A model generated the notes under the pieces. That model was not told the DNA's origin and did no database searches. It saw only the letters and a list, made by a program, of their open reading frames with translations. This document shows positions 5,076 through 32,210 of a DNA stretch of 64,000 bases, piece by piece. The stretch lies in the sequence record OP617745.1; one strand, written 5' to 3'. Position 1 is the first letter of the stretch, and each line of letters starts with the position of its first letter. The translations under genes and the position numbers were made by a program.

Positions 5076-5573
5076 ATGGCATTACGTTCAAAAAATTTTC
5101 TATTCAACAGAAAAGACAGAGATGGAGAATATAAAGATTTTCCAAATAGTGATGTGTGGTATCCAAACAATGTAGATTATTACTGGGATGAGCAATCAAC
5201 TCCAATGGCAAGTGGTGGATATTATGGAAGTACTACAGGTTTGCACACAATTTCTTTTACACTACGAGAATTCACTGGAAGAATTTATGTACTTGCTACA
5301 CTAGCAAGCAACCCCACAGATCAAGACTGGTTTCCAATTAAATTTAAAGAAAGTTGTAAATATTATCTTGAATTTACGGATATGTCGGTTTATAACCCAA
5401 TTACCGCAGAAATAAACCGCGAACGTGGTACAACTGGTACTTTTGCTGAAACATTAACTGGTAATTTTACATACATTAAAATTGGTATTGATAGAGATTA
5501 TATCAGTGAAAATCCAAGTGATATACAAAAAGGTGCAGTAGGGTACTTAGAATCTATATTAATTAATTTTTAA
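5076..5573 (+). CDS. Hypothetical virion structural protein
   Basis: 165-aa ORF behind a late promoter, first gene of a 3-gene operon. Confidence 0.6.
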   Translation: MALRSKNFLFNRKDRDGEYKDFPNSDVWYPNNVDYYWDEQSTPMASGGYYGSTTGLHTISFTLREFTGRIYVLATLASNPTDQDWFPIKFKESCKYYLEFTDMSVYNPITAEINRERGTTGTFAETLTGNFTYIKIGIDRDYISENPSDIQKGAVGYLESILINF

Positions 5574-13107: not shown

Positions 13108-16100
13108 TTATATAACATTTAACAAGTTATTGAGTACCAAACCGTCAATTTTCAATGAATTAGCATACACACTTACATCAATTGGTTTGTAATAATTTTT
13201 ATAAACACTAAAATTAAGTTCAACACCAAGATTGATACCAGTGAATGTATATGTTTCACCTTTAGCAAAATAGTGTTCAGCACTATACATATCTGAACGA
13301 AGGATATTGTTATTATTTCGCACATGAACTTTTTCATATCCAAGTACGATAATATCATCATAACTAGTACTACCAGTAATGATATTATCCTTAACACTAT
13401 ATGTACCAACTGAAACTGGCTCCACCACATAAGTGGTATTTTCATTCTCAACTTTAGTAACACTGGTTACTGTACAAGTTGTATCACCGATATACACTTT
13501 ATCTGTTAAATCATATGAGTAAGTCCATCTTACACCATCGAACACAGGTTTAATATCATCGACGTCATATTCATATACAGTAAACTCTAAACTTTCTGGA
13601 GTTCCAATACGAACCAGTTCATCTAATGTACCAACACCGGTATTTGGCATGAAATATCCACTATCAACCACACCATCAGAAGTTTCAACTAACTCATTAG
13701 AGATTAGCCAAACATCCAAATCTAATGGATCTATTTCATCCGTGTAATCACCATTATTCAAAGAAATATCATAGAATACATCATAGTCCATAACATCAAC
13801 TCTGTAATTTCTTATACTTTCATACAACAAATCACCATTGTTATTGAACTCATGGTCTGCAAAACTTCTAATACGAATAACATTTATACTTGTTTTTGTA
13901 TAAGGTTCACCAGTATTATTAGTGGTTAAATTATTAAACTCAAGTTTATTTCCATTTGAATCAACCAAAGAATAAACTCCGTTATTAAGCTCAACTTCAA
14001 ACATAATAGGTCGATCATTCTCTTTGATTTTATCAGTACTGAGAATAAGTTCATGAGTAAAGTTCTGGTATCTGTAATAATCATCACCATCTGGGGTAAA
14101 CACCATAACTTTATCACCACTATTGAGATTACTATTTTTCATCAAGAATTCAGTACTGCTTATAATACTATCAATAGTACTGATATAATTATAAGAGTCT
14201 TTCTTAATTACTGTGCGGTTTACATAGTTTTGTACCAGACTATATGGAGGAATGCTCACAATAGCTTCTGTACGCTTGTATGGATTGAGAACAACAAAAC
14301 CCTCTATCTGGAATCGACTAAAGTCTTTAATCTGCTGTAGAGATGTAGAATCGTTACTATAACCATCTACTGTAAAACGCATTTGTGAAATAGAATTAGC
14401 ACTTGGGTTCAACTCGGAAATATCAATGAAAACTGATTCAGTCAAATCACCTTCGTAGCTCAGTGCGACAGTTTTATATTGAGATTCCAAACCTAAATTA
14501 TCATAAGCATTCATATCATTATAATACTTCTGCCCCTTGATTCCCTCAAGTACAACCATGTAGTCACTGTACATTGGATTATTATCATCCATTTCCAGAT
14601 CATCCATATCAATCTCAACTGCTGTAACTACTGAACCATCAGTAATGAAAAGATCTTCCATATATTCATCAATGCTACGATCATCAGGAATACTAACATA
14701 ACTACCGTTAATATTGAATCTAATATATTTTCTCGGGATCATTACAAATGCCTGAATATCCATTGATTTACGATTACTATTCAGAATATCCTCTGCATAT
14801 GCATAAGGATCATCACTGTCTTTATCAAACGTGTTACGAATAGCAGTTAGTACATGAATAGCATCTTTGTAATAACGACCCTGAGAATCAATATCATATT
14901 TGAAACAATAGATACCGTATTCAATTTCCATTACGCTTCTGATGGTTTCTTCATCAGCATCTGGTGTTTCTTCCAAAATAAGTTCTCTATAATGGGCGAA
15001 TAAATCCTCACTAATTTCAAAATATCCCATGTTAAAGTCAGAACTTGAACTAAAACCAAAAGGCAATCTCGTATTCGGATTATCATTGTAAATTTCACCA
15101 CTCAGACCACAACCAATGGTATCATGGATTACATCTGAACTCATTGAACTATAAAGTTTTAATCTATTACTCAATGTATTATATTGTGAATACATTCTAA
15201 CATCTTGTGTTAAGTTAGAAGTACTATACAATTCAGAAGTGATTCTGTCTAAATCAGAAGTGAAACTTTCAGTTCTTTCAGCATCATCAACGTTCAATTT
15301 ATACCATGCATTGATAGCATCAACTAAATCCAGACTTGTATCAAAATCAGAATATAGTTCAAACATATCAACAGAAATCTGAGTATAAATTTCATCTACC
15401 TCAACAACTGGTAGTGTATACTTGAAACGCTGGATTTCATAGTACTGTACATTATCATCAGAATTACTTACATACTTAGCATTGTTCTCTTCCAGACTTG
15501 TAACATCATATAAATCACTATCAGGCTGGCATTGAACATTATCAAATTGCATTGAGATATCAATTTCCTGGAATTTTCTATCTGGGTAAACGAAGTCGTT
15601 TGGTATTGAACCAACTACCACCCATTGTCCAGTACTTTCATTATATTCAGCATATTCATGATCCCAAATATCAGATTGTGTTTTAACCCAAATTGTACCG
15701 TTATATTCATAACCATTTGGATCTAAATCATTACAAACACCATAAACATAATCAGTGTCGGATGTTTTCTGTTCAATTTGAGAACGAATTTTAGTCCTGT
15801 ACGGTTTAACTTCATTGAAATATTCAATAATCTGATTAATCAATTCGTCATTAGTGTAATTTTGTTTAAGTGATTGTTCTAACCCAACAATATAAATGTA
15901 TGAAGTTTTGAATACCCAATCAACCACACCCTGTTCAACGTGTACGTATTTAACCATGTCAAATACAATATTACTTTGAGCTAAATCGAATGTATTTTTG
16001 ATTAAATCTAATGCACTTCTTACATTAATTTCCTTGTTGCTTAAAGAACCATCACTGTTATAAACTTCATACCCATCATATAAAGATGAATTAAGAGCGA

Positions 16101-19100
16101 TTGTGCTGTTTTGACGCCCAATAGCATTCCAGAATACAGTATTACGTGATGATGTTTTCACATACATTGTCCATCCATCTGAATCAGTGATTCGAATAAC
16201 ATCACCAACTTGATAGTTTTTGGTATTAGCTATATCCAGGCTGGCTTCCTGAGTATAATCAGTATTTTCATCATACCCATCACTATACCAGTCAGCATAT
16301 TCCCAGTACTGGGTCATGTCAAGAGAAGTACCAAGTGATTCAACATAATCACTCTGTTTAATCATACTATGTTGTCCTTCACCTAGACCTTCCAGTGTGA
16401 TTGTTGATGGATTAGCATCAGTACTCTTTGTAGTCATGAATCTTATATAACCATTACTATCGTAGTGGACGAAATATACTGAAGTTGTATCTAGCGGGGA
16501 TGGTAATACACCAGTACTACTCAAAATTACTGCATCGTTTTCATCGAATTTATCAAAATCAGTTGAGACAACAAATTCGTTATTGTATGCCAGAACCCTG
16601 AATGTAACTGAATTTTCATTCACCTCAGTAGTTTTAACCTTGAAAACTTCACTCATTAATACCGTATCAGTTATGATATTTTGTGTTTTGTAATAATTAT
16701 TTGCACTATCTACAAACGTTCTGCGAGCTTCAATCAAATCCATAAACCAGGTTTTAGATGAACCCAACCCTAATTCTACACCAGGATAAACAATTTCATT
16801 TACTACACCACTCTTCGTGGTTTCGTGTCCTTTCAGAGAATTCCACAGAGAATTCCATATATCTGAATTGAAATTGTAGCTATCTCCTTCTTTACATAGC
16901 TGATATTGTTCATGTTTAATAATATCAACACTATCTTCATGATAAGAAACTGTCAAAATGCTGGTATCATCAGTAATTTCATATTGCATATTACTAAGAA
17001 TGAATGAATTCTCGTTAATTGGTGCAAACCAAGGAACGTCCAGTAAATGTGGATCTTTAATAATACGTGCAATATCAGTACATGATTTACTTCTGGTGTT
17101 AATTGGTGGTACATAAATTGTATCTCTTACCCAGAAATAATAATACGTAACATATGAATCAGTTGTTTCATCATACTCAATGAATGAAGTATAATTATCC
17201 ATGATTGCAGTACCAGAAGGTATATACATAGTGTTATTTTTATTATTTTTAGTTTGTTCCTGACAGTATTTGTCCCAATTATATGGCTGTACTGGAGATT
17301 TAACCCACTCAAGAACATTAATATCACTATGTGGTAGCAATCTACCCCAGTTATAACGACGATATTCATTTGTAGCATCTTCATCAATGTCACCATTCTC
17401 ATCCAGTACTGGGCGAGTGTAATCCAAATAAAATGCAGTACTGGTGTCCCACCATACTTGACCAACTTTCTCAGAACCCCATGCTTGAAGAGTTTCTCCA
17501 TTGCTATTGTACTGAGCAGGGTCTACTGGAGAGATATAAGATACATCTTTCATTGCAGTCCCAGGTAAAACACCATTAATTGGGTCAAATATATTAAGAT
17601 ATAATTCAGTAATGTTTGTTTTTGAATTATAAGTAGATGGTCTATCAAATAAAGTACTATCTGGAACATCAAAACTGTATTTTTTATCAATATATGCCTG
17701 GCGTTCGGTTGTATCACTGAATCTGGATGTATATTTGTACAGTTTTGGTCTTGTATCTGGATCAGTGAAATTAATTGTGATACTTGTATCAAACGGAACA
17801 ACAATTTTAGTTTTATCATCACCTGCCGTGAAATATTGACTTTCTACTGTTAATGCATCTGGCATAAAATATGTATCATCAACAAAATAATAATAATCAC
17901 CATCATCTAATGGAGCTTCGGCATCTAATTGAACAGTACAGTACTGTTCAGCATAAGTATCAGTATTTTCAATTGGAGTAATTGATAACATAGATACACC
18001 AGTATCAACTAAATCAAAAATGTTCCATTCCTGATTCATATCAACGAACATCCACACTGAATCTGGATTTTCACCATTATTTTTAATATAATTCATGCGG
18101 TCTTCATATGAATCCTGATAAGTCCATGTAGTATAAGATACTTCATTTAAATTAACTGGGCCAATATCAGGTAAATGGATATTACCACTCTTCCCTGAAC
18201 GCATCGGGAAGCGGAATTTACCTTTAGGACGAGTAATCCATCTGGAATCTTCACCTTGTGAACCATAATAAACTATTTCAGTACTACTTGTACTTGTATT
18301 AACATCTTTATCAAACGTAACCAGTTGTGGTTCTTGTTTAAAATCACTGTTAATTAATTGAAATTGTAAATTTTTCTTGGCATTAACGTTTCCATAAGTA
18401 CCAACTTTAAAAGCCCACTCTTGTAGTGCTTTATATTCATCAGTATTATATGATTTAGATACACGAAGAACGCGTTCCATTACCAAATTAGAGCCTTTAT
18501 CTCTAATAAAACCACGATAAAAATCAACACGGTTGGGATTATTAGTGATCATTTGCTGTAAGTAATCACGAGTTTGATATCCAATAACATGAGTACTTAG
18601 ATCATACAGTTGAACATCAGAAACAGGATCATTTGAATCATAATAATGTTGGAAATTAGTAACTAATGTTTCAAATGATGGTAATGTACCAGCTTCAAGA
18701 ATTATAAATCCGGGTGCTTGTAGGCGACCAACCCAGTTATCAGTGATATAACCGTACATTTTCACCAATTCCTGAATAGAACCGAATGTAGGTTGATAAA
18801 TGCTATCACCAAAAATAGTTTTATCATCAAATACCACTGCATGTTCCCATGAACATACACCTAAACGAACCAACGCCATGCGTTTATCGGCATCTTCATT
18901 AACTCTAACAGTGAAAACATTACCAATTCTTGATGTTTCAACTTCATATGGGTAGATACCACTGTTATCATCGTCCAACAGACTCCAGACACCACCATTT
19001 GTTTCACTAATACTTTGTACTGAGCCAAAATAAGTTCCGAATTTGGCATTTTTAGAGCTTGGTGTACATGAAATGTAATCACCAATGGTTAAATCTGTGG

Positions 19101-22100
19101 TACTCCATTGTAAAAAGTACTTAGCAATAGTAGACCAGTCCTGTTGTACCCCAGTGTCATCAACATCTTCAAAAATCCATCCATGTTCAACAAGATATTG
19201 ACCATATCCACACAGGAATGTATAAACATCCTGGAATGTGTTAAGAATAGATCCATATTCAAGCGTATCATCTTCTTTCCATTCCATATAATGAACAACA
19301 GTGCGATTTCCTTCAGTTACGGTTACTTTTTTACCATTTTTAACTGGTAATTTATAAGTAAACGTAGCATTAACCAAATCATAACCTTTAATAATATAAT
19401 TACTACCATTGAAAGTGATTTTAACTGCACTAAGAACTTCATTTTTGATATTATTAGAGCGTACCAGTCCGATTGTTTGGTTTTCTTGTGAAATTAAACC
19501 AAACGATTCAGATGTAAATGTTAATTCATTGCTCTTTGTAAATCCACCAAGCTTGTGTGCAATACTGATGTATGAAGTTCTAACTAAATCACCATATTTT
19601 GAAGTAATATTCTTACTTTGATAGGTTAAGTAGTTACTAACAGCCATTTGATAACCAAGAACACGAGTATTATTCTCACCATGAACCACCGTATCTGAAT
19701 TAAAATTCAGTCTAGTTCTGGTTTCTTTGTACTGCAATTGTAAACCACCAGTTTTTACAGTTTTTAGTGTATCATTTAGTGTATCCCAGAAATAATTACA
19801 GAATTGTGCTGGTTTTGCACGATATATCTGCATCATTACATCATAACTAAACATTGCGTTATTCATATAGGTGAATTCGTTGTCACCCATATCACCATAA
19901 GACCATGGTGCACTGCGTTCTTTGATCGTACCTTTTACTAAACCAAGAACGTCAGGTTGAATATAATCAACGGTACAAATTTCTTTACCATTAGTTGAAT
20001 ATTCACCGGTTTTAGTAATTACAAATGGTTGAGTACCAAAACGCTTGTACTTATCATGCTGTCCCTTACGATCTCCATATAAAATGGTACCAGTACTGGC
20101 ATCACCTTTAACACCATTAACATCCCAAAGACCACTTGGTACTAATTCACCACTTTCATTAACAACCAATGCTTCATATACATATAAAATGTCATCTTCA
20201 TTCGTGCCTACCTGAACTTCAGTTGGTTCATATTCCTGATTCCACCAGGTTGGACGAACACCAAAGCCAAACATTTCCCATGGATGAGTTGCAGGGCGAT
20301 AAGTCCCGAACTGATCAGTATATATGGCACGCCAAGAACCACGTGCAGGAAAATCAGTAATTACACCATTAACTGTATAATAGGTACCACTATAATTCCA
20401 CGTCATCCAGTTTTGTTGGTCATAATTATGAGTAGTACTGTCAATTCCGTTGGTTGCAATGAAGTTAATATACCCACGTAGTAATAATTCATCACGTTCT
20501 TCTGCACTATACTCAGTATCCCTGTAATATGGTGTTGGAAACAGATCTGAACTATCAAGTTCAGGTTGATAATCTTCATCTTTGAAAGTATTATCAATAC
20601 TGTTATAAATTCTATTCTCAAGTTCATAGATAACATCATCCATTTTATCTACACCGTTAATAACACGATAAGATTTGGTAATTTCACCAGTATGACGAAT
20701 ATTATACGGTACTTGTTTGGATGCAGCAGTCAGGTATACAGTTTTTTCTGGCTTATGTACTTTAAGAACACCCATAAATTGTGGTGTAGGTGGAATAAAA
20801 GTACGAATTGTAGTTGTAGTACTCCCTACGCCATCGTAATAGAACGCAAAAGTAGAATCTTTACCAACATTGATGTTACTCAAAATAGTATCACAAATAT
20901 CACTACTTGAAGTGCTTAAAAATTTACTTGGGTCTTCTTTATACATATTAAGCATGTAGTTTTCAAATCTGTTATTAAAACGAAGATATTCACCTTGTAA
21001 AAACATTAATGCTTCAAAAAGATCAATATCACTATTAGCAGTATGTGCCATTAGTGGAAGTAGTGATCCTTCGTTTTGAATAATTTTAGTACCAACAGCG
21101 TTATCAACTAACCCTTGTTCAAGACGTTCTTCATAATCATTGATATTATCCACGGCACCAGATGTGATATTTTTTTGTACAATTTCCTGAAAATGTAAAG
21201 TATAATTACTTTGATCAATATAAGAAATATTATCACTATATGGGTTATTTTGTAAATTTACTGGAATTTCATAACTACCAAGATTGGTATCTGGTACTTC
21301 AGTACTACTATAAGTTCTGATTTGAATCACACTTTCAGAGTCCAAATCAACAGAGTCACCAATGGTGATGCTTTGTACTTTACCATTAGACACATTTCTT
21401 GTATAATCTTCAACTACAACACCATTGACCTGAATTTCAATAATATCTGAACTTCCATCAATGACTTTTTGTGCCAGTTCATAACTGCGGTTATACAATT
21501 CACTCTGAATACCTTCAGTGTTTACCATATGCCAGTCATAATAAGTTTCAGATTCTTCTTTGTAGTATTGATAGGTTGCATTGGTTTCAATAACATATGC
21601 ATACATACCATCAATGGCTTGACTGGAAAAGCTTTCCATTTCATATACAGTACTGAACACTCTGTACATATCAGTGCGTTCAATTTGAGGTGTTTGTTTT
21701 ACAAATTGTTTAGAAAATTCAGTACTACGAACCCAGTCAGTTTTTAATACACTATCTTCATCACCAATGATATTGTAATAATAAAATCCTGGGATTTCTT
21801 TAGTTTCACCCGAACTGGTGTATTCATAACGAGTACTTTCAATAAAATTTTCGTATATATAATAATTATAATCACCCAATTCTACATTATATCCATAATA
21901 ACTATCAACTTTGTAGTTGTAGTTAATTTTTAGTCCAAACAGAGAAGAACCACTGAAGGTACTTGACGGATATACAGTACTATCTTGTAATTTTACACCA
22001 TTTCGATCATATAACTGGAAAAGAGGGAATGCATTTGTTCCATTCTTTTTCTGAGTTGCAATCCAGTTATGCCCATTCCAGTACATAGTGGTATTTCCAT

Positions 22101-23088
22101 AAACTTTACCACTTTTAATTAATACAACATCACCATCAAGTGGTTCACCACTTACACGTTCTGGTGTTTCTTCATCTGGGTCTAATGCTAAACCATAAAC
22201 GCGAGTACCATCCTGCATTTGGTTGATGTATACTTTATAAATTCTGTTATTTTCACCACTGTTACCAATGCTGGTAAAAAGAATACGCATTCCGTCTAAT
22301 GGGATTTGTCCATCAATACGAATACCCTGATTAATATCTTTTTGTACGATATCTTCTGGTTTTAATGAATCACTTAGTAGATCCACCACACCACGGAACT
22401 GTGTACCAAAATTCATTAGTTCGATATCTTTGTTATATTCAATAATTGGTACTTGTGCACGTACAAAACGATTATCATATGATAATTCATCATTCAGTAC
22501 TGAACCATCTGGTAAAGTATCACCAATGGTATACCAGAAGTTTTGTAATGACCATAAGTTTCCGTTTTTAGCATTACGTTGCATTACAACATAATCAGGA
22601 CTAGTGATACCATATTCATTTTCAGTATCCCAAAGATATGAACTAAAATTAATCATTTTATTTGGATTAATTGGTGGAGTCCATGAATAAATTCTTGAAT
22701 TAAACAGTCGGCTTTGATTATCAGTAATTGCACCATAATGATTCATATAAGAAACCAGATCATCATAGAATTCAATACTACGAATACTTTGATCTACATT
22801 ACGGGAGACATAAGCTGGAGATAACTGATATGCTTGGCGTGGTTGTGTTGATTCATTAACGAAAATCTTACCACTCGCTGCTGGAGAACCCATATCACCA
22901 AGATACCCATCAACTATTTTTTGTTCAGTTGGATTAAAGAATTGTTGAATAACATCATCACATACCTTTTGGATATCTTCCAAGCCTTGCATCCATTCTG
23001 GTAATCTCTTAATGAACAACTTTTGTTGTACTGCTTCAGCCGTTTTTGTTGGTTGAAACTTAAAATCATTAGCCATGTTTAGCTCCAT
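13108..23088 (-). CDS. Giant (3326 aa) virion structural protein, probably baseplate wedge
   Basis: Uninterrupted 10-kb ORF directly downstream of the gp6-like gene; IIEYFNEVKPYRTKIR motif; late promoter upstream. Confidence 0.7.
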   Translation of the reverse strand: MELNMANDFKFQPTKTAEAVQQKLFIKRLPEWMQGLEDIQKVCDDVIQQFFNPTEQKIVDGYLGDMGSPAASGKIFVNESTQPRQAYQLSPAYVSRNVDQSIRSIEFYDDLVSYMNHYGAITDNQSRLFNSRIYSWTPPINPNKMINFSSYLWDTENEYGITSPDYVVMQRNAKNGNLWSLQNFWYTIGDTLPDGSVLNDELSYDNRFVRAQVPIIEYNKDIELMNFGTQFRGVVDLLSDSLKPEDIVQKDINQGIRIDGQIPLDGMRILFTSIGNSGENNRIYKVYINQMQDGTRVYGLALDPDEETPERVSGEPLDGDVVLIKSGKVYGNTTMYWNGHNWIATQKKNGTNAFPLFQLYDRNGVKLQDSTVYPSSTFSGSSLFGLKINYNYKVDSYYGYNVELGDYNYYIYENFIESTRYEYTSSGETKEIPGFYYYNIIGDEDSVLKTDWVRSTEFSKQFVKQTPQIERTDMYRVFSTVYEMESFSSQAIDGMYAYVIETNATYQYYKEESETYYDWHMVNTEGIQSELYNRSYELAQKVIDGSSDIIEIQVNGVVVEDYTRNVSNGKVQSITIGDSVDLDSESVIQIRTYSSTEVPDTNLGSYEIPVNLQNNPYSDNISYIDQSNYTLHFQEIVQKNITSGAVDNINDYEERLEQGLVDNAVGTKIIQNEGSLLPLMAHTANSDIDLFEALMFLQGEYLRFNNRFENYMLNMYKEDPSKFLSTSSSDICDTILSNINVGKDSTFAFYYDGVGSTTTTIRTFIPPTPQFMGVLKVHKPEKTVYLTAASKQVPYNIRHTGEITKSYRVINGVDKMDDVIYELENRIYNSIDNTFKDEDYQPELDSSDLFPTPYYRDTEYSAEERDELLLRGYINFIATNGIDSTTHNYDQQNWMTWNYSGTYYTVNGVITDFPARGSWRAIYTDQFGTYRPATHPWEMFGFGVRPTWWNQEYEPTEVQVGTNEDDILYVYEALVVNESGELVPSGLWDVNGVKGDASTGTILYGDRKGQHDKYKRFGTQPFVITKTGEYSTNGKEICTVDYIQPDVLGLVKGTIKERSAPWSYGDMGDNEFTYMNNAMFSYDVMMQIYRAKPAQFCNYFWDTLNDTLKTVKTGGLQLQYKETRTRLNFNSDTVVHGENNTRVLGYQMAVSNYLTYQSKNITSKYGDLVRTSYISIAHKLGGFTKSNELTFTSESFGLISQENQTIGLVRSNNIKNEVLSAVKITFNGSNYIIKGYDLVNATFTYKLPVKNGKKVTVTEGNRTVVHYMEWKEDDTLEYGSILNTFQDVYTFLCGYGQYLVEHGWIFEDVDDTGVQQDWSTIAKYFLQWSTTDLTIGDYISCTPSSKNAKFGTYFGSVQSISETNGGVWSLLDDDNSGIYPYEVETSRIGNVFTVRVNEDADKRMALVRLGVCSWEHAVVFDDKTIFGDSIYQPTFGSIQELVKMYGYITDNWVGRLQAPGFIILEAGTLPSFETLVTNFQHYYDSNDPVSDVQLYDLSTHVIGYQTRDYLQQMITNNPNRVDFYRGFIRDKGSNLVMERVLRVSKSYNTDEYKALQEWAFKVGTYGNVNAKKNLQFQLINSDFKQEPQLVTFDKDVNTSTSSTEIVYYGSQGEDSRWITRPKGKFRFPMRSGKSGNIHLPDIGPVNLNEVSYTTWTYQDSYEDRMNYIKNNGENPDSVWMFVDMNQEWNIFDLVDTGVSMLSITPIENTDTYAEQYCTVQLDAEAPLDDGDYYYFVDDTYFMPDALTVESQYFTAGDDKTKIVVPFDTSITINFTDPDTRPKLYKYTSRFSDTTERQAYIDKKYSFDVPDSTLFDRPSTYNSKTNITELYLNIFDPINGVLPGTAMKDVSYISPVDPAQYNSNGETLQAWGSEKVGQVWWDTSTAFYLDYTRPVLDENGDIDEDATNEYRRYNWGRLLPHSDINVLEWVKSPVQPYNWDKYCQEQTKNNKNNTMYIPSGTAIMDNYTSFIEYDETTDSYVTYYYFWVRDTIYVPPINTRSKSCTDIARIIKDPHLLDVPWFAPINENSFILSNMQYEITDDTSILTVSYHEDSVDIIKHEQYQLCKEGDSYNFNSDIWNSLWNSLKGHETTKSGVVNEIVYPGVELGLGSSKTWFMDLIEARRTFVDSANNYYKTQNIITDTVLMSEVFKVKTTEVNENSVTFRVLAYNNEFVVSTDFDKFDENDAVILSSTGVLPSPLDTTSVYFVHYDSNGYIRFMTTKSTDANPSTITLEGLGEGQHSMIKQSDYVESLGTSLDMTQYWEYADWYSDGYDENTDYTQEASLDIANTKNYQVGDVIRITDSDGWTMYVKTSSRNTVFWNAIGRQNSTIALNSSLYDGYEVYNSDGSLSNKEINVRSALDLIKNTFDLAQSNIVFDMVKYVHVEQGVVDWVFKTSYIYIVGLEQSLKQNYTNDELINQIIEYFNEVKPYRTKIRSQIEQKTSDTDYVYGVCNDLDPNGYEYNGTIWVKTQSDIWDHEYAEYNESTGQWVVVGSIPNDFVYPDRKFQEIDISMQFDNVQCQPDSDLYDVTSLEENNAKYVSNSDDNVQYYEIQRFKYTLPVVEVDEIYTQISVDMFELYSDFDTSLDLVDAINAWYKLNVDDAERTESFTSDLDRITSELYSTSNLTQDVRMYSQYNTLSNRLKLYSSMSSDVIHDTIGCGLSGEIYNDNPNTRLPFGFSSSSDFNMGYFEISEDLFAHYRELILEETPDADEETIRSVMEIEYGIYCFKYDIDSQGRYYKDAIHVLTAIRNTFDKDSDDPYAYAEDILNSNRKSMDIQAFVMIPRKYIRFNINGSYVSIPDDRSIDEYMEDLFITDGSVVTAVEIDMDDLEMDDNNPMYSDYMVVLEGIKGQKYYNDMNAYDNLGLESQYKTVALSYEGDLTESVFIDISELNPSANSISQMRFTVDGYSNDSTSLQQIKDFSRFQIEGFVVLNPYKRTEAIVSIPPYSLVQNYVNRTVIKKDSYNYISTIDSIISSTEFLMKNSNLNSGDKVMVFTPDGDDYYRYQNFTHELILSTDKIKENDRPIMFEVELNNGVYSLVDSNGNKLEFNNLTTNNTGEPYTKTSINVIRIRSFADHEFNNNGDLLYESIRNYRVDVMDYDVFYDISLNNGDYTDEIDPLDLDVWLISNELVETSDGVVDSGYFMPNTGVGTLDELVRIGTPESLEFTVYEYDVDDIKPVFDGVRWTYSYDLTDKVYIGDTTCTVTSVTKVENENTTYVVEPVSVGTYSVKDNIITGSTSYDDIIVLGYEKVHVRNNNNILRSDMYSAEHYFAKGETYTFTGINLGVELNFSVYKNYYKPIDVSVYANSLKIDGLVLNNLLNVI

Positions 23089-27272: not shown

Positions 27273-27761
27273 TTATGCAGCAGATTCGACGATTTTAGCC
27301 ATTTTATCTGCACGAGATGTAGTTTGACGATACCACAGTGAATCACGCATCTGACGTCCTGCTTCTTTATAATCAGCACGACCTAAAGCAGCAAGTGCTT
27401 TTTTGAAGTTAAGCACTTTTGATTTACCCATTTGAAATACCATTAGCCATAGAACACGCTGTACGCTCTCTGGAGCAGTCATACCGAATTGTTGATAGAT
27501 TGCCTTAGCATCATTGTATGCTTGCTTAGCGTCCTTCAGGAGCAGTGCATCAGCCTCTTTTTCAGTTAGTCCGTTTTTAAAGTTCTCGCCTTTTAAAACA
27601 AGATGACCATAACCAATAGTATCTAGACCTAAACTGTCTTTGTATACCCAGAATTTGTTATTTTTAAAATAACCAAGTTTAGACTGATACGCGATAGTAC
27701 CTTCAAACTCTTTGACTTCAGTAAAAAACTGTTTATCATCACTAGAAATAGACCAGCCCAT
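27273..27761 (-). CDS. T4-type (GH24) lysozyme, stand-alone
   Basis: EFEG...YKDSLGLDTIGYGHL, MVFQMG, A...MRDSLWYRQT..RA. Confidence 0.9.
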   Translation of the reverse strand: MGWSISSDDKQFFTEVKEFEGTIAYQSKLGYFKNNKFWVYKDSLGLDTIGYGHLVLKGENFKNGLTEKEADALLLKDAKQAYNDAKAIYQQFGMTAPESVQRVLWLMVFQMGKSKVLNFKKALAALGRADYKEAGRQMRDSLWYRQTTSRADKMAKIVESAA

Positions 27762-27797
27762 ATTTTTACCTCTTTTACTTAAATTTACTTGACTTTG

Positions 27798-27804
27798 TAT
27801 TTAT
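27798..27804 (-). promoter_or_regulatory. Putative late promoter ATAAATA
   Basis: About 37 nt upstream of the lysozyme start. Confidence 0.6.
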
Positions 27805-27871
27805 ATTAGAGTACATTTGTGTAGTAAAAATATTTGAATACTAAAAGTTGTTAATTATTTAAGGTGTTTAA

Positions 27872-28294
27872 ATGAGATATGATGTTATAAATGATGTTAG
27901 ATCTGTTTCTGTGGTTAATAAAAAGTACTTCTATAAACCAAAAGGTAAAAACAATAAGAAGTATGAAACCATGATTGATGAATACGGAACAGAAGTGATT
28001 TGTAGTGATGTACCACTTGATTTACCAGAATTATCATATGAATACAATTCTTCAATTGAATACAATGGTGTTGAATTTATTTATAGAACGTATATTCGTG
28101 ATAATTATGAAATAGAAGATGATGTAATATACAGACGTATGACAGATTACACTGAAATGGATGAAGATGAGCTATTCCAGTACTCATTGGTATTCGAGAA
28201 TGATAATTTTTCATTTCATGATGCAGTTAAAATACAAAAATGGTTAATTATGAGATATCGTGTTGTTAATACCACGATTAATGTGGATTTATAA
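27872..28294 (+). CDS. Hypothetical protein
   Basis: 140-aa ORF with AAGG RBS. Confidence 0.6.
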   Translation: MRYDVINDVRSVSVVNKKYFYKPKGKNNKKYETMIDEYGTEVICSDVPLDLPELSYEYNSSIEYNGVEFIYRTYIRDNYEIEDDVIYRRMTDYTEMDEDELFQYSLVFENDNFSFHDAVKIQKWLIMRYRVVNTTINVDL

Positions 28295-28305
28295 GAGAGA
28301 TTATA

Positions 28306-28764
28306 ATGCCTGGAAAACCAGAGAAAATTTATGACAATACAGAATTAACCATTATACTGAAAAATGTAAACAATTACAAGAATCTAAGTCCAGAAGCAAG
28401 GGAGATATTCAAAGAAACGAATATCAAGTACAAACCGAGCGGTGCTGAAAGACCCTATGATATGGATCATATTTACTATATGATTAGAGTTCTAACTGAG
28501 GTGTCACTTGATTCAGTACGAAAGAGTTTAATTCTAAGGACAGGTGTAGTATTATCTAACAAGTCAATACAAAGATATAAGCGTGTTGTAATAGAAGTAT
28601 CAAAAGCATTGTTATGTACACACAGAAATGGTATTGCTTTGCATATCAAAAAAGAAGAAGGAAAACACTATTTGACAGATCAACAAAGTTCCAGATTGAA
28701 CACTTTAAGGAAAAAGGGTGTCCCTATTGAGGACATGATAAATTACCTACAGAAACTGCTCTAG
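28306..28764 (+). CDS. Hypothetical basic protein (possible DNA-binding)
   Basis: 152-aa Lys/Arg-rich ORF; its stop abuts the repeat locus. Confidence 0.55.
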   Translation: MPGKPEKIYDNTELTIILKNVNNYKNLSPEAREIFKETNIKYKPSGAERPYDMDHIYYMIRVLTEVSLDSVRKSLILRTGVVLSNKSIQRYKRVVIEVSKALLCTHRNGIALHIKKEEGKHYLTDQQSSRLNTLRKKGVPIEDMINYLQKLL

Positions 28765-28920
28765 CCCAGTATTCATGCGGGTTGTAGGAATTAGGGACAC
28801 CTTTTTGTGTGTTTTTTTGGTGCAGTGTCCCTAATTCAGACCAAGAACCCAGTATTCATGCGGGTTGTAGGAATTAAGGACACTCTATTATTAAATTCAT
28901 ACTTTTCCTGTCCTTAATTC
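28765..28920. repeat. Two 36-bp direct repeats (28765-28800, 28848-28883), each completed by a downstream inverted arm
   Basis: CCCAGTATTCATGCGGGTTGTAGGAATTA(G/A)GGACAC twice, 35/36 identical; arms GTGTCCCTAATTC (28825-28837) and TGTCCTTAATTC (28909-28920). Confidence 0.9.
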
Positions 28921-29180
28921 AATAGGTCGCTACGCTCAAATATTGATCTTCGTCACTCCGTTCCTCGATCAATATTAAAATCGGCAATTTGCGTTTTGTT
29001 CTCGATTCGCAAGCGAACCAATCACAAACCAGCAGCGAATTGCGAATCTCCCTTCGGTCAGTCAGTAATACTGCTTTTGGGAGAAAGCAACTCTCGGAGT
29101 GATGAAAAAAACGAATTCCATTCGCCTCATGAAAAACCAACGAATAGTCGGTTCTGTTGAATTACTTGAATTATAATTGT

Positions 29181-29487
29181 CTGTATTCACTTCTAAGGAG
29201 TTTTATACACTTCCTTAGTGGTTCTATGTATTAAACAAGAAAACACATCAGAATGCGATACAGGAATTCTCGTAGCTATTATCAAAGCAGTTACTATCCA
29301 TTGTAATATCTGCTCCATTAAAAGGACGCCCAATTCAGTACTGAAAAACTTTTGTGAGTAAGTCATTTCAAACTGATTAATTTAAGGACACCCATTCAAA
29401 TTAGCTGTATCCACTTCTAAGAAGTTTTATACAATTCCTTAGTGGTTTTATGTCTTAAACAAGAAAACGCATCAGAATGCGATACAG
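29181..29487. repeat. Two 83-bp direct repeats (29181-29263, 29405-29487)
   Basis: 77/83 identical; each bounded by CTGTAT...ATACAG and holding internal hairpins. Confidence 0.9.
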
Positions 29488-29513
29488 AGCGTTTTATGTG
29501 GTGTTACAGAAAT

Positions 29514-29548
29514 AACAAAAGGAGCACAAGGCTCCCTTTGTTTTTTTT
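29514..29548. terminator. Intrinsic terminator
   Basis: GGAGC-acaag-GCTCC with A and T flanks, next to the gp5-like stop. Confidence 0.7.
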
Positions 29549-29549
29549 A

Positions 29550-32210
29550 TTACTGACATGCCTCAAGACGGCGTGCCATAAACTCGGCACGTCTTGTTGT
29601 TTGACCATACCATGCAGAGTTGCGAATGTGTGCCGCCGCCAGGCGATAGTTTCCCTGTGCCATAGCACCAAGCATACCCGTAAATTGTTGTACGCCACCT
29701 TTACCCATCTGGAATACCATCTCGACTAGTACAAGTTGAGCCATATATGGGGTTTTCATCTTATAAGATGCATAGATAGAACTGGCATCGTTGATTGCCT
29801 TTGTACTATCACGAACCAACATTGCATCAGCTTGTTCTTCAGTAATACCTGAACTGAAGTTTTCACCACGTAATACTAGGTGTCCATAACCAATAGTTGG
29901 AAACCCTCTACTATCAGTATAAGTCCAGAATTTATCATTTCTAAAGTACCCTTTTGCTTGTTGATATTGTTTAGTACCTTCAAACTCTTTGAGTTCTGGC
30001 ATTAATGTAGAATCACCCGGTTTTATTTGCCAATCCACCGCAGTTTTATCTACTGTACCAATATTCATTTCTTGTGGGGAGTAATTAACCACTGTACTGC
30101 TTTTTGATGTTCTTGGTCGTCTAACCGGAACATGACGAGACCCACGTTGTGCATAACCAGAACCAATTGTTTGTATCTTGGTACTAACAACCAGTTCATT
30201 ACTATCATTACCAGACACCACTACTGTGTTAGATGATGTTTCTTTAGTAGCTTTACCTTGTATTAGTGTTTTATTTGCACATTCTGAACCCGTACCAGTT
30301 TGGGTAGCATAGAATAGACCAGGATCTACCGTACCACTAAAACCATATAAATTGGCTGAATCGACGCGAATTTCAAATTTCAAAATACCACTTGCAGTAC
30401 CAATTTCCTGTCCTTTTTGTACTACATCTTTACTATACAATGAAGTTTTCAAACCATAAAATACTGATTTATACCCAGAATTATGTACAATATACACTGC
30501 ATTATTATATATACCAACTGTACCGGCATCAGGTGCAACTACAGTAGAATTACATTGTATTTCCCAGCCATTATGATCTGTTGTACTTCCTTTATTATCA
30601 GTTATATTTTTACCCCAATACCCGTACTGACGAATAATACCATTACATGGCATTAACATGTGAAGACCTTCATATGTTTGGGAATAACCATTCATACCAG
30701 TATCAGTCATTAAATCTTGTGTCTGCACTTGAGATGTTTCTGGGGCGTATGAGATGAACTGTACGGCCTCCTGTTGTTGAGCCTGTACCAACTGTGGCTG
30801 GACGTCATTCGCAGGTTGTGGATGTACTGGTGCCGTAGTTGAACCACTTCCTGAACCATTGTAACCTGTATCTACGGTACTACCATGATTTGATGCATCC
30901 TGCCAGTTTGAAATATTATGAATATGTTCATTAAGTCCAGCATTTGGTGTTTTAAAGTCCGGTGCCATAAATTCAGCAGTACCCTTATTACCTGAAGCAT
31001 CAACTGTAAGATTCTGCCCACCACCACTGATATTAGTGGATGAATCACCGATGATGTTAGCAGTTGAACCTTTCATGGAAACATTACTACCAGCAGTCAC
31101 ATCAGTACTACTACCGCTTTGTAAACGTAAAGAAGCAGCCGTCACCAATCGTAAATCTGCACCACTATTGATAACTACTTGTCCTTCTATTTTAGAATCC
31201 AATGAACCAAGTAATTCAAGTTTAGTATTACCACTAATACGAGCATTAAGATCCTGTCCAGTTTCTATATTACATGATCTACCAGCAACCATATTAATAT
31301 CCTGACCAGCACGAATGTTAATATTTTTATCGCAGTGAATATTAATATCTCCATCACCGGTAAATGATATACGAGCAGTACCATCACGATTGATTAATAA
31401 AATATCACCAGTTGCCTCAGATAACATCAACTGAGCACCACTACGAGTACGCAAAACAATACCTTCATTGGTTCTTGCTCCCACCCTGGTATCATTTACT
31501 GGGTTGTTGAATTGTGTATCCTGATAAGTATCTGGATCATCATCCCATGAAGGAACATTAAGTTCATCATCGGTATATCCATCATCTAGTACAAAACTAT
31601 TACCCCTTGGTGTACTCATACCATATACTGTACTAATCATTTGTCTGGTACTACTTCTGTTAGCTACACCAGCTTCTTTGTCGTATAAAAGGTTTTGTTT
31701 TTTTAAACCTTCAACGATAGGAACATTGACATATTTTTCATTTTGATCAGTACTGATGGTATTTCTGTCATAATCGGTAACTGGTAATGGAGAATCTGTA
31801 CCACTATATTGTGATGTAGTGGAAGTTGCCATACCTGGAACCATTGTGTTCATTCGTTGTTCGTATATACAACCAATCCAGTAAGCTTCATGTGATCTAC
31901 CCTGAATGAATATAACAATTACTGGACAGCCTACATCGGGAGGTACCGCCCAGAATCCATAACCTTTTGGATACTGACCGTATGCATCAGCACTCGGTAC
32001 ACCTGGGGTTTTACCTGCAAATGGAGACATATAAGAACATTCAATCCATGATTTCTTATCGTCTCGTTCACTTTGTGAACCCTGAACCCATACTTTAATT
32101 TTACCACTCATAGTAGGATCTCGGTTGTCCATAACAATCGCTACCTGTGGATAAGCTGGGTCAAAACGACCCAACTGTTCTTTTGCATACTGTTTACTTG
32201 TATCTACCAT
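29550..32210 (-). CDS. Baseplate hub/tail spike (gp5-like): OB-fold, beta-helix, degenerate M23 domain, C-terminal lysozyme
   Basis: DNRDPTMSGKIKVWV..YGFWAVPPDVG, LRTRSGAQLML, GxxN/S repeats, HNGWEI..VAPDAGTV..VQKGQEIG, EFEG..YTDSRGFPTIGYGH. Confidence 0.85.
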   Translation of the reverse strand: MVDTSKQYAKEQLGRFDPAYPQVAIVMDNRDPTMSGKIKVWVQGSQSERDDKKSWIECSYMSPFAGKTPGVPSADAYGQYPKGYGFWAVPPDVGCPVIVIFIQGRSHEAYWIGCIYEQRMNTMVPGMATSTTSQYSGTDSPLPVTDYDRNTISTDQNEKYVNVPIVEGLKKQNLLYDKEAGVANRSSTRQMISTVYGMSTPRGNSFVLDDGYTDDELNVPSWDDDPDTYQDTQFNNPVNDTRVGARTNEGIVLRTRSGAQLMLSEATGDILLINRDGTARISFTGDGDINIHCDKNINIRAGQDINMVAGRSCNIETGQDLNARISGNTKLELLGSLDSKIEGQVVINSGADLRLVTAASLRLQSGSSTDVTAGSNVSMKGSTANIIGDSSTNISGGGQNLTVDASGNKGTAEFMAPDFKTPNAGLNEHIHNISNWQDASNHGSTVDTGYNGSGSGSTTAPVHPQPANDVQPQLVQAQQQEAVQFISYAPETSQVQTQDLMTDTGMNGYSQTYEGLHMLMPCNGIIRQYGYWGKNITDNKGSTTDHNGWEIQCNSTVVAPDAGTVGIYNNAVYIVHNSGYKSVFYGLKTSLYSKDVVQKGQEIGTASGILKFEIRVDSANLYGFSGTVDPGLFYATQTGTGSECANKTLIQGKATKETSSNTVVVSGNDSNELVVSTKIQTIGSGYAQRGSRHVPVRRPRTSKSSTVVNYSPQEMNIGTVDKTAVDWQIKPGDSTLMPELKEFEGTKQYQQAKGYFRNDKFWTYTDSRGFPTIGYGHLVLRGENFSSGITEEQADAMLVRDSTKAINDASSIYASYKMKTPYMAQLVLVEMVFQMGKGGVQQFTGMLGAMAQGNYRLAAAHIRNSAWYGQTTRRAEFMARRLEACQ

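Follow-up and report, generated by a model that had tools for sequence, protein, structure and literature searches.

The question raised by this locus is what function, if any, is served by two closely similar repeat units that follow the stop codon of a small orphan gene in a jumbo phage. The window, a 64-kb stretch of record OP617745.1, comes from the RaK2-like Klebsiella jumbo phage KP13-7, and the units lie in an accessory cassette of about 1.8 kb (27762-29549) within the baseplate operon of the RaK2-like genus, in which two plus-strand genes are followed by 785 gene-free bases (Table 1). The cassette is specific to the genus; a syntenic element was sought in the sister genus, and the whole cassette was absent from 121Q, where 36 nt separate an endolysin-like gene from the gp5 hub gene. 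The putative cassette promoter sits in the 110-nt divergent gap preceding the 140-aa ORF. The 140-aa protein had no match in Pfam, matched only PHROGs of unknown function, and had no detectable relatives outside the RaK2-like genus. Homologues of the 152-aa protein have an HNH endonuclease gene upstream; a degenerate form of such an enzyme was considered for the 140-aa protein and rejected, as no similarity was seen. For the 152-aa protein, profile searches of Pfam, PHROGs, and PDB returned no function and no DNA-binding or initiator domain, and the ESM Atlas and single-sequence AlphaFold were uninformative for the 152-aa and 140-aa proteins; the structure models, at pLDDT 39 and 47, were unusable. 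Toward the distal end of the cassette lie the 94-nt repeats, through which phage Muenster has already lost ~222 nt by deletion, and the closing terminator (minus strand 29542-29514, plus strand 29521-29535) has a T-run after each stem. The ordinary terminators of KP13-7 are GC hairpins that have short loops and are accompanied by runs of A and T.

Table 1. Features of the cassette and its repeat units (window coordinates)
Feature	Position	Strand	Basis or remark
Sigma-70-like promoter, TTGACT-17-TACATT	27789..27817	+	Consensus scan, 9/12, consensus match only; precedes both cassette genes
140-aa ORF (RaK2 ORF074), cassette gene 1	27872..28294	+	ORF list; annotated in relatives
152-aa ORF (RaK2 ORF075), small orphan protein, predicted all-helical; candidate repeat binder	28306..28764	+	ORF list; annotated in relatives
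Arm-like copy in ORF 3′ end, pairs with 28792-28806 (register B, stem I4)	28712..28726	+	I4: 15 nt, 93%
17-mer CCCAGTATTCATGCGGG, copy 1	28765..28781	+	Begins 1 nt past stop codon
Unit 1 left arm GAATTAGGGACAC, AATTARGG site copy	28788..28800	+	Repeat and site searches
T-rich tract TTTTTGTGTGTTTTTTT in 'loop 1'	28802..28818	+	Read from sequence
Unit 1 right arm, inverted site copy	28825..28837	-	Repeat and site searches
17-mer, copy 2	28848..28864	+	Repeat search
Unit 2 left arm GAATTAAGGACAC	28871..28883	+	28877 is A in KP13-7 only
Unit 2 right arm, inverted copy	28909..28920	-	28914 is T in all genomes
Gene-free stretch with perfect 10-bp hairpin (28939-28976, I11)	28921..29169		Repeat search
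94-nt repeat, copy 1	29170..29263		D1; 89% identical to the second copy at a spacing of 224
Sixth arm-like copy ATTTAAGGACAC	29380..29391	+	Site search
94-nt repeat, copy 2	29394..29487		D1
Bidirectional intrinsic terminator closing the cassette and the gp5-like hub gene	29514..29549	both	Terminator scan

An earlier note on this DNA had described tandem 36-bp repeats with hairpin arms. The direct repeat itself is real (28765-28800 and 28848-28883, 35 of 36 nt identical), with a period of 83; the copies do not stand head to tail, and the unit is 83 nt. The arms are perfect inverted repeats, of 13 bp with 24 nt between them in unit 1 and of 12 bp with 26 nt between them in unit 2 (28871-28882/28909-28920). 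The single differences between the units, G/A at 28794 versus 28877 and C/T at 28831 versus 28914, were found as described, and these positions pair inside each unit. Between the units, loop and linker show random similarity, as had been claimed for the loops, so that within the 83-nt unit the conserved 36 + 13 nt (35/36 and 11/13 identical) are sharply set off from random loops. The small CCC...GGG hairpin does open each unit, but on its own it is no more stable than shuffled sequence (z 0.01), and its significance must therefore come from conservation elsewhere. The G + C content is 0.40 in 28765-28930 versus 0.33 for the window. The arm pattern occurred four times in 64 kb against 0.16 expected. 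Searched at up to two mismatches, AATTAGGGACAC gave six copies in the window, all clustered within 28718-29391, whereas a shuffled 64-kb window yields ~5.7 matches that are scattered. One of the six, CAATAGGGACAC on the minus strand at 28718-28729, overlaps the arm-like stretch 28712-28726 at the ORF 3′ end. No further copies of the element were found elsewhere in the genome, the '2 places' per record being the two units matching each other, and in metagenome assemblies the 36-mer forms a separate unitig at about twofold depth.

Comparison with relatives changed the interpretation of the paired difference. The earlier note had read the change as compensatory and as a sign of selection on secondary structure, an argument that is weak, as the A-T pair is one private SNP of KP13-7. 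In seven other isolates and three metagenome samples, the corresponding pair of unit 2 has G on the left and T on the right, indicating that G·T is the normal state, and one environmental sample carries C>T at 28831 in unit 1 with no change in the partner. Some of these variants were taken from public 'RNA' runs that are wastewater contigs and probably DNA. The covariation check, run on eight genomes that are 98-100% identical, found one variable arm position and no independent compensatory double changes. In other lineages, position 6 of the site is G, A, or T irrespective of its partner, with a T·C mismatch in one of them (L109). A compensatory pair in a single genome can thus dissolve once relatives and alternative registers are considered. 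The idea of a duplicated functional module fared better, since the element is kept across the genus and in environmental samples, and since unrelated mobile elements carry each of its two parts as well.

The same variants bear on two other explanations. It is improbable, though worth weighing, that the element has no present function and is a local 83-bp duplication or the scar of a mobile cassette; its arms would stay alike through gene conversion or intrastrand template switching in a quasi-palindrome, and the A-T pair of KP13-7 would be a product of this mutational process. Changes at the homologous arm position (28914, 28831, and 28877) fit conversion among the four copies, there is a single locus per genome, and the neighboring 94-nt repeats have given rise to a deletion in Muenster. 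The bimodal conservation, however, requires either constraint or very targeted conversion, and neither the recurrence of the arm core and its 40-nt geometry with a protein family in unrelated elements nor the exactness of the 17-mer across phyla (both described below) would be expected of a scar. The second explanation is that each unit encodes a 19-aa peptide, with ATG at 28775 or 28858 and TAA inside the right arm, in which case the G/A difference would be read as Arg>Lys, whereas the C/T difference would be silent in a Pro codon. The two reading frames are open and equally long (MRVVGI[R/K]DT...CP-stop), but an upstream Shine-Dalgarno sequence is absent, and elsewhere unrelated sequence follows the ATG-bearing motif. 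A 1-nt T indel at 28902 shifts the frame of unit 2 in four of the eight isolates and in three samples, and this frameshift polymorphism led us to reject the mini-ORF as very improbable.

On either strand, the predicted fold of the region is better than those of shuffled sequences (z -4.4 and -3.7), and the arms can also pair in a second, mutually exclusive register (register B) comprising stems I4 (28712-28726/28792-28806) and I6 (28824-28837/28871-28884). When the ORF 3′ end was included, the minimum free energy (MFE) fold of KP13-7 and the centroid folds of both KP13-7 and RaK2 adopted the I4 and I6 register, while the RaK2 MFE fold kept I6 and replaced I4 by long-range arm pairing. The private change of KP13-7 weakens this alternative register through an A·C mismatch (-70.8 versus -77.6 kcal/mol in RaK2, although the RaK2 sequence compared also carries one extra T).

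These folds give weight to a serious rival, possible but in our judgment on the unlikely side, in which the element acts as RNA in the 3′ end or UTR of the early ORF074-ORF075 transcript, as a terminator, attenuator, insulator, or 3′ stabilizer. The alternately oriented arms (a'0, a1, a'1, a2, a'2) would form two exclusive hairpin sets, the 17-mers would cap long stems in register B, and I4 would run into a U-rich tract; in any of the first three roles, possibly coupled to termination of ORF translation, the element would block antisense transcription into the late baseplate genes. It begins 1 nt past the stop codon on the strand of the gene, the I4/I6 folds of the KP13-7 MFE and both centroids place the 17-mers at the stem tips (z -3.4 and -5.0), and the wobbles in the window arms are G·U on the sense strand. 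The tract TTTTTGTGTGTTTTTTT, which matters only for a terminator or attenuator, overlaps the 3′ strand of I4 (28792-28806) and extends 12 nt past it. Against this, the hairpins first described have loops of 24 and 26 nt, compared with ~3-8 nt in an ordinary intrinsic terminator, and neither is followed by a U-tract; an ordinary terminator was accordingly rejected, none being called at 28765-28930 on either strand. Stem I4 has such a tract (28802-18) but encloses 65 nt, which is atypical. Rfam 15 gave nothing for the window at gathering score and nothing relevant for 27700-29650 at E up to 10, and in 27 related loci it identified tRNAs only; the known-RNA search found no tRNA or tmRNA gene. Given no Rfam match and no promoter, a stand-alone sRNA, one of the options offered in the earlier note, is without support, while a protein-binding site and a priming signal, also on that list, stay live.

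Evidence of a different kind came from the relatives of the 152-aa protein. We identified 15 distant homologues (26-37% identity), and in the lineages examined each is linked to a gene-free repeat module. The core AATTARGG adjoins the homologues in L099, L102, and L109, and in each of these modules one copy lies at or overlaps the stop codon, a position that would also suit an RNA element. In L099 and L102, as twice in the window, a later copy has a partner in inverted orientation, the two cores being offset by exactly 40 nt. The arms there, in contrast, match at only ~8-9 of 12 positions by manual count. With arm sequence and 40-nt geometry kept and pairing imperfect, the element behaves like a protein-binding repeat, and conservation of the arm sequence, together with imperfect pairing, across lineages whose proteins are ~35% identical is not what a constraint on structure alone predicts. 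Modules in L103, L106, and L107 carry different iterons, in up to 10 copies and both orientations; that of L106 is upstream of the gene, and the arms of L106 and L107 include A·C and T·C mismatches. The homologous modules are also rich in AGTACTG repeats. By eye, the blocks TTTGCGTTTTGTTCTCG (near 28991) and AGTAATACTG (near 29065) of the window resemble blocks of these modules, a weak likeness, and the CTCGCTwTCGCTCA block of the homologous modules did not score in the window at up to three mismatches. No replication genes were seen within 6 kb of the family in other islands.

We tentatively favor, at somewhat less than even confidence, the explanation that the two units are a cis-acting nucleoprotein site of the accessory cassette, iteron-like and most plausibly origin-like. 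The units would form the core of the non-coding control region of the cassette, and what were taken for hairpin arms would be copies of a 12-13-bp site, AATTARGGACAC, for which the 152-aa protein is the most likely binder, acting on double-stranded DNA. Four of the six site copies in the window make up the two inverted pairs, each preceded by a 17-mer copy with the potential to form the mini-hairpin CCC-A-GUA-[UUCA]-UGC-GGG. On this view, the arms would have hairpin potential only because the sites are inverted, and KP13-7 would owe its A-T pair to a neutral change at a degenerate site position. Against this reading, the gene-free part has no DnaA box (TTATCCACA, at most one mismatch) and no long AT-rich unwinding stretch, and the wobble-type arm mismatches, mostly G·T on the sense strand, would fit RNA too.

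The 17-mer is widely distributed. Exact copies of CCCAGTATTCATGCGGG were present in 84 IMG/VR viral contigs of 38 lineages and in about 470-500 plasmids, and a 21-mer version was present in more than 120 bacterial contigs of many phyla, the exact 21-mer being common to mobile elements of Bacillota, Proteobacteria, Actinomycetes, and Bacteroidota. The usual setting is among iteron-like repeats, near replication genes, recombinases, or guaA or tRNA ends. Within 150 nt of the 17-mer, 57.9 positions were covered by repeats versus 12.4 (p = 1.7e-7), the corresponding values in this window being 93 and 23. Primase-helicases accounted for 5 of the 10 large ORFs adjacent to it. In plasmid pIGWZ12, it lies in the region upstream of rep, ~90 nt beyond a DnaA box that precedes an AT-rich stretch, iterons, and the Rep_3 gene; the origin of this plasmid has been mapped upstream of rep (PMC6856555). 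In a Klebsiella phage-plasmid, it lies ~350 nt past the RepB 3′ end, and in phiEcoM-GJ1 ~1 kb downstream of the RNA polymerase gene. Bacterial copies stand at guaA or tRNA ends near integrases, and many are beside recombinase genes. With 3′ ends of guaA and tRNA genes, terminator-like hairpins, and one divergent promoter region among them, the contexts are mixed, suggesting that an origin is only one of several types of hub. No protein family, among ORFs of at least 90 aa, accompanied the 17-mer in more than 4 of the 38 lineages, and string searches of the literature on both strands retrieved unrelated primers only.

Some of these contexts favor the RNA rival. Clean lower stems of at least 5 bp occur in ~10% of 17-mer contexts, and about one in ten bacterial copies caps a canonical lower stem of this length, mostly with a T-run next; some follow tRNA genes directly, and 37 of 57 close neighbor genes turn their 3′ end toward the motif. 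Where the inner stem varies, with T6>C in three cases and A7>G in two, pairing is preserved on the motif strand. The motif, however, also occurs antisense inside operons and in a divergent promoter gap. A model of the 17-mer as the tip of a variable-stem hairpin was rejected, the lower stem being extended only modestly (2.7 versus 2.1 pairs in viral loci, 2.0 versus 1.2 in bacterial loci).

The association with origins raises the possibility, unlikely on balance, that the 17-mer is a single-strand priming signal in the style of the complementary-strand origin of phage G4, the duplicated unit serving as a pair of lagging- or leading-strand starts. On the strand opposite the motif, synthesis by a DnaG-type primase would begin at the CTG of ...GAATACTGG... 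and yield pppAGUAUUCAUGC.... The G4 record places the primer, pppAGUAGGG..., at 3970-3997, with ...CCCTACTGC... as its template; the motif complement and G4 have a TACTG context and an AGUA start in common. The presence of the motif near primase-helicase genes, in plasmid origin regions, and, in pIGWZ12, close to a ColE1-like primosome assembly sequence is consistent with priming, as are the AGTACTG repeats of the homologous modules. The likeness to G4 is, however, limited to 5 nt, and the three-hairpin architecture is absent. Primase trinucleotide specificity varies among phyla, but the 21-mer does not, being identical from Bacillota to Proteobacteria. Many copies are not at origins but at the ends of guaA or tRNA genes, or next to genes for recombinases, and the inner-stem variants favor the motif strand, not its complement, as the strand that folds.

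Plasmid occurrence also suggested that the 17-mer might be the nick region of a ColE1 (bom)-type oriT used for mobilization. The ColE1 bom sequence ...TAAGCCAGTATACACTCCGCTATCGCT... has CCAGTAT and a nearby CA in common with the motif, and most plasmid matches are typed as mobilizable. A manual alignment, however, matches ~9 of 17 positions, and short-word BLAST of the gap regions against the bom region gave nothing. The functional oriT of the pIGWZ12 family is described as a 178-bp fragment; 178 bp is the length of the mobA-mobC gap in pIGWZ12, and the motif is ~380 nt away, beyond mobC. We consider this assignment hardly credible.

Returning to the nucleoprotein site, its two parts would divide the labor. 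Mobile elements of many phyla set the 17-mer among lineage-specific repeats of their own, at origins, element ends, and module boundaries, and specificity may come from the cassette protein through the repeats while the 17-mer would be a shared signal for a host or widespread factor. The origin-like role that we infer would lie in replication or maintenance of the cassette or of the phage DNA. A bolder proposal, which we hold possible but doubtful, is that bacterial mobile DNA shares a near-universal signal that has escaped description, the 17-23-nt motif (AAA)CCCAGTATTCATGCGGG(TTT), a small bulged hairpin read by a cross-phylum factor such as the machinery that primes replication or terminates transcription. 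Phages and plasmids, like integrative islands and transposons, would each add their own specificity repeats, and the KP13-7 element would be a duplicated instance coupled to a new family of binding proteins, small and site-specific. That a 21-mer should be exact across phyla with no Rfam family and no match in the literature is unusual. If one conserved factor reads it, the 21-mer would give shared access to how mobile DNA is replicated, terminated, or insulated, and it would serve in metagenomes as a practical marker for origins and element boundaries. At the locus itself, an unannotated 785-nt gap now belongs to an accessory cassette that is defined and holds a candidate pair of protein and site, in a group of phages used against Klebsiella.

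Several known systems resemble the element in part. It differs from a CRISPR array, which was rejected, in having two repeats only, 'spacers' that each end in an inverted copy of the 3′ part of the repeat itself, and no cas-like neighbors. Set beside an attP site, where arm-type repeats flank a core next to an integrase gene, the 17-mer has repeats on its flanks and bacterial copies near integrases; KP13-7 is a lytic T4-like myovirus, and the nine neighboring ORFs that were scanned included no recombinase. REP, REPIN, and BIME extragenic palindromes, which are dispersed families, also have two conserved inverted arms with an unconserved spacer, alternating orientation, a location just after a gene, and, as here immediately 5′ of each left arm, GTAG. 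The KP13-7 element, by contrast, has one locus per genome, AT-rich arms, and a spacer of 24-26 nt; a RAYT-type transposase was not seen. The promoter-early stem-loop (PeSL) cassettes of T4-type phages, reportedly described by Arbiol et al. in 2010, likewise combine a small regulatory repeat with non-essential genes among conserved T4-like genes, and nearby repeats mediate deletions, as in Muenster; the KP13-7 unit, however, has no sigma-70 promoter or terminator-type stem-loop and is not dispersed in the genome.

With terminators and attenuators, the element shares a location right after a stop codon, two exclusive registers, a U-rich tract past one stem, and a 17-mer that elsewhere caps canonical terminator-like hairpins, and it departs from them in its long loops without a U-tract and in the span of the alternative stem. 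With G4-type ssi sites, it shares a hairpin, a CTG in TACTG context that could template an AGUA-initiated primer, and an association with origins, set against the short common sequence, the lack of a multi-hairpin architecture, cross-phylum exactness, and non-origin contexts. ColE1-type oriT (bom/nic) was rejected on the low identity to the motif. The closest comparison is with the iteron arrays of theta replicons and phage origins, of which P1 and lambda are further examples. Such origins have at least three clustered 12-22-bp repeats in non-coding DNA, and six site copies were found here; an adjacent gene of a recognized Rep family was not found for the 152-aa or 140-aa protein in Pfam, PHROG, or PDB, nor was an AT-rich unwinding element or a DnaA box. 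The element thus differs from these arrays in a protein that lacks similarity to initiators, in its six site copies only, and in its residence in a lytic T4-like jumbo phage. It resembles them in its cluster of short repeats, specific to the lineage and present in either orientation, next to the gene for a small protein, in repeats that change with the protein lineage, and in a 17-mer that is also present in a bona fide origin region, the Rep_3 oriV of pIGWZ12.

The window matched Klebsiella phage KP13-7 with 100% identity, and RaK2, K64-1, Muenster and further Alcyoneusvirus jumbo myoviruses with 98.5-99.7%. The element, consisting of two repeat units, begins directly 3′ of the stop codon of a 152-aa ORF (RaK2 ORF075) within a 785-nt gene-free gap, which is bounded by a bidirectional terminator common to the gap and the convergent gp5-like hub/lysozyme gene. 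Since only 36 nt separate the endolysin-like gene from the hub gene in the sister genus 121Q, the segment holding the ORF and the gap is a ~1.8-kb genus-specific insertion (the cassette) within the baseplate operon. In 121Q, an HNH endonuclease gene (L009 7101-7865) has been inserted between the gp6-like wedge gene and a gp25-like gene; insertion of accessory cassettes into the baseplate operon is therefore a recurrent event in these jumbo phages. A 3,326-aa ORF, annotated in 121Q as a virion structural protein, adjoins the gp6-like wedge gene of the window. The T4 late-promoter consensus, TATAAATA, occurs 37 nt upstream of the endolysin-like gene, which the cassette has split from the hub gene; there are five further − strand and two + strand copies in the window.

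Coordinates of the element, the cassette and other features of the window
Feature	Position	Strand	Remark
Cassette	27762-29549		sigma-70-like promoter, 140-aa ORF, 152-aa ORF, gene-free region
152-aa ORF	28306-28764	+	
Element (two repeat units)	28765-28920		
Stem I4	28712-28726/28792-28806		second pairing register
Stem I6	28824-28837/28871-28884		second pairing register
19-codon frames MRVVGI[R/K]DT...CP*	28775-28834, 28858-28917		motif ATG to right arm
94-nt repeat	29170-29263, 29394-29487		89% identity, 224-nt spacing
Bidirectional terminator	29514-29549		
TATAAATA	27798-27805	−	
3,326-aa ORF	13108-23088	−	
CAGTACTG (examples)	76, 2626, 14034, 17404, 20091, 29336, 42578, 50624		

A repeat search of the window bore out the 36-nt repeat described in the earlier note, present twice with a period of 83 nt, and its inverted arms pair perfectly, over 13 bp across a 24-nt spacer in unit 1 and over 12 bp across a 26-nt spacer in unit 2. 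The loops are indeed unrelated, as loop and linker similarity between the units was no higher than in shuffles, while the conserved segments are identical at 35/36 and 11/13 positions; this combination does not resemble a duplication undergoing decay. The arm pattern occurs four times against 0.16 expected, far above chance, and all six near-copies of the arm 12-mer in the 64-kb window fall inside 28718-29391. The small CCC...GGG hairpin at the start of each unit is present, but thermodynamically trivial by itself. Because the arms are copies of one sequence (core AATTARGG) in alternating orientation, with a fifth copy inside the 3′ end of the 152-aa ORF, a second pairing register (stems I4 and I6) is possible, in which each 17-mer, the first 17 nt of a unit, forms a hairpin tip. 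When the 3′ end of the ORF was included, this register was used by the MFE fold of KP13-7 and by the centroid folds of KP13-7 and RaK2; in the RaK2 MFE fold I6 was kept, but the left arm of unit 1 paired with the right arm of unit 2 instead.

The G/A and C/T differences between the units do lie at paired positions (28794/28831 and 28877/28914), which had been read as compensatory change and hence as selection on pairing. Among the aligned genomes, unit 2 has T at 28914 (right arm) in 8/8 and G at 28877 (left arm) in 7/8; A at 28877 occurs in KP13-7 only. Among contigs from public 'RNA' runs, which are probably DNA, those of three independent environmental samples also carried G at 28877 and listed no change at 28914; a fourth sample had C>T at 28831, which is the corresponding position in unit 1, and an unchanged G at 28794. 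From the alignment and these contigs it follows that G·T is the common state and that A-T was restored by a single private change in KP13-7. This change stabilises the hairpin originally proposed for unit 2 (DNA, -8.1 vs -5.3) and gives an A·C mismatch in the I4/I6 register; its compensatory status depends on which register forms. The fold energy is -70.8 kcal/mol for KP13-7 vs -77.6 for RaK2, which has one extra T in loop 2. Covariation among relatives thus amounts to the private change at 28877 and a C>T at 28831 without a partner change, and a single, register-dependent event is insufficient to show selection on pairing.

No relatives of the 152-aa protein outside the genus were found by tblastn or word-indexed search, and an exhaustive HMMER search returned 15 homologues with 26-37% identity. 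The family is a small orphan, predicted to be all-helical, for which Pfam, PHROGs, PDB and Atlas gave no match. Elsewhere a large serine recombinase lies ~1-1.5 kb upstream of its gene, and we interpret such loci as integrated islands. In every lineage examined, the homologue gene is linked to a gene-free stretch rich in short repeats, which is 470-870 nt long and downstream in six lineages and ~1.1 kb long and upstream in locus L106. Three loci (L099, L102 and L109) have the same repeat core as the window, AATTAGGG/AATTAAGG/AATTATGG, with one copy at or over the stop codon and a later copy whose inverted partner starts its core exactly 40 nt on, as in both window units. Their arms match at only ~8-9 of 12 positions by our own count, and those of L109 mismatch (T·C) at position 6, the variable position of the window. 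L103, L106 and L107 contain different repeats in up to ten copies and both orientations, whose 'partners' show G·T, A·C and T·C mismatches. Site sequence and spacing are kept with the protein family and pairing is not, as would be predicted for protein-binding repeats. Most economically, the supposed hairpins would be inverted pairs of sites to which the protein of the cassette itself binds, set around the two 17-mers, and the 17-mer would be a motif in general use at nucleoprotein hubs of mobile elements.

Besides repeats, the modules of L099, L102, L103, L106, L107 and L111 share ordered blocks with hairpin potential (TTGCGTTTTTCTCG..., CTCGCTwTCGCTCAGACA, GTGTCGGCC...GGCCTAAAGT), which had no Rfam match and might encode a structured RNA or form a complex DNA site; window positions 28921-29169 resemble them weakly, by eye only. 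AGTACTG clusters fill gene-free modules beside 152-aa homologues in other elements. The window itself has 31 copies of the 8-bp palindrome CAGTACTG in 64 kb vs ~0.6 expected from base composition, and 124 of AGTACT vs 22 expected, mostly intragenic. Phage genomes usually avoid palindromes, and this enrichment runs counter to that tendency. Each copy of the 94-nt repeat carries a hairpin and a − strand terminator-like stem; Muenster lacks ~222 nt here, the size expected from recombination between the copies, and small − strand ORFs annotated in RaK2/K64-1, inconsistently among records, overlap them. The 19-codon frames, which differ between units by Arg/Lys and a synonymous Pro, were judged non-coding, since a frameshifting indel is polymorphic there and a ribosome-binding site is lacking. 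CRISPR-like and REP-like readings and homology to a ColE1-type oriT were examined and set aside.

A longer form of the 17-mer, the 21-mer, was found exactly in at least 120 bacterial contigs among the matches listed, against ~0.3 expected by chance, our estimate from the stated size of the collection. The taxa listed include Bacillota, Beta- and Alphaproteobacteria, Actinomycetes, Bacteroidota, Ignavibacteria, Verrucomicrobiota and others. Among these matches, the commonest neighbour is the guaA 3′ end, followed by tRNA genes, integrases, serine recombinases, transposases, ParA and Rep_3, and 37/57 close neighbours have their 3′ end towards the motif. Natural 17-mer variants fit a bulged mini-hairpin, CCC-A-GUA-[UUCA]-UGC-GGG, and 5/5 inner-stem changes keep pairing on the motif strand, a count that is statistically not decisive. 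The motif matched no Rfam family, and literature searches for the string on both strands turned up no paper that contains it. In about 1/10 of the bacterial contexts listed, the motif forms the tip of a canonical terminator-like hairpin. Such contexts, along with the position of the element right after a stop codon, a U-rich tract that follows stem I4 and a G·U bias on the sense strand, favour the main rival explanation, an RNA attenuator, terminator or insulator built from the alternately oriented arms and capped by the 17-mers; conservation of arm sequence but not of pairing speaks against it, and we consider it somewhat less likely than a DNA-level site.

In one element family found in many Clostridia (L114, L122, L124, L136, L141, L154, L158, L159, L161, L168, L170, L171, L176, L191 and L193; IMG/VR L053/L068), the 21-mer occupies the ~100-nt gap between divergent parA-like and large serine recombinase genes, a promoter/operator position and not 3′ of a gene. 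A second copy, inverted and slightly diverged, lies 3-60 nt from the exact one in L187 (~5288-5350, directly 3′ of a tRNA gene), L121 (~6726-6785) and L166. In a few Bacillota MAGs, a multi-copy family (L119, L123, L129, L132, L134, L150, L165, L172, L174, L180 and L192) has the motif ~50-120 nt from contig ends with near-identical flanks, and resembles the subterminal region of an insertion sequence or of a similar repeat.

As to the element itself, a DNA-level iteron-type cis site, most plausibly origin-like, is the reading that we tentatively adopt. The exact 17-mer occurs in 84 IMG/VR contigs representing 38 lineages, non-coding in all but one and typically as AAACCC-AGTATTCATGC-GGGTTT, and neighbourhood clustering of ORFs of at least 90 aa gave no protein family common to them. 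Its ±150-nt surroundings are enriched in short lineage-specific repeats (57.9 vs 12.4 covered positions, p = 1.7e-7), with a repeat density in the lineage's own top 5% in 21/37 lineages. Primase-helicases make up 5/10 of the large adjoining ORFs; that the 17-mer is a primase start signal is a lead only, as it has just the TACTG context and AGUA start in common with G4. Among 84 GenBank phage records with the 17-mer are the phiEcoM-GJ1 group, where the RNA polymerase gene precedes it by ~1 kb, and SSU5-like Klebsiella phage-plasmids, where it lies ~350 nt beyond the repB 3′ end. It is also present in ~470-500 plasmids, chiefly the 4.07-kb MOBQ4 pIGWZ12 family; the origin of pIGWZ12 itself has been placed upstream of rep (PMC6856555). 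The 17-mer of this family lies in the rep-upstream region, ~90 nt from a DnaA box, beyond which follow an AT-rich stretch, iterons and the Rep_3 gene. On the side opposite the DnaA box, ~45 nt from the 17-mer, pIGWZ12 (L095 2700-2750) has ...GAGCGAGGAAGCGGAAG..., presumably a ColE1-like PriA-type primosome assembly sequence as judged from the ColE1/pBR322 sequence and, in part, from a stretch, GAAGCGGAAG, that ColE1 shares; the arrangement suggests that the priming region is composite.
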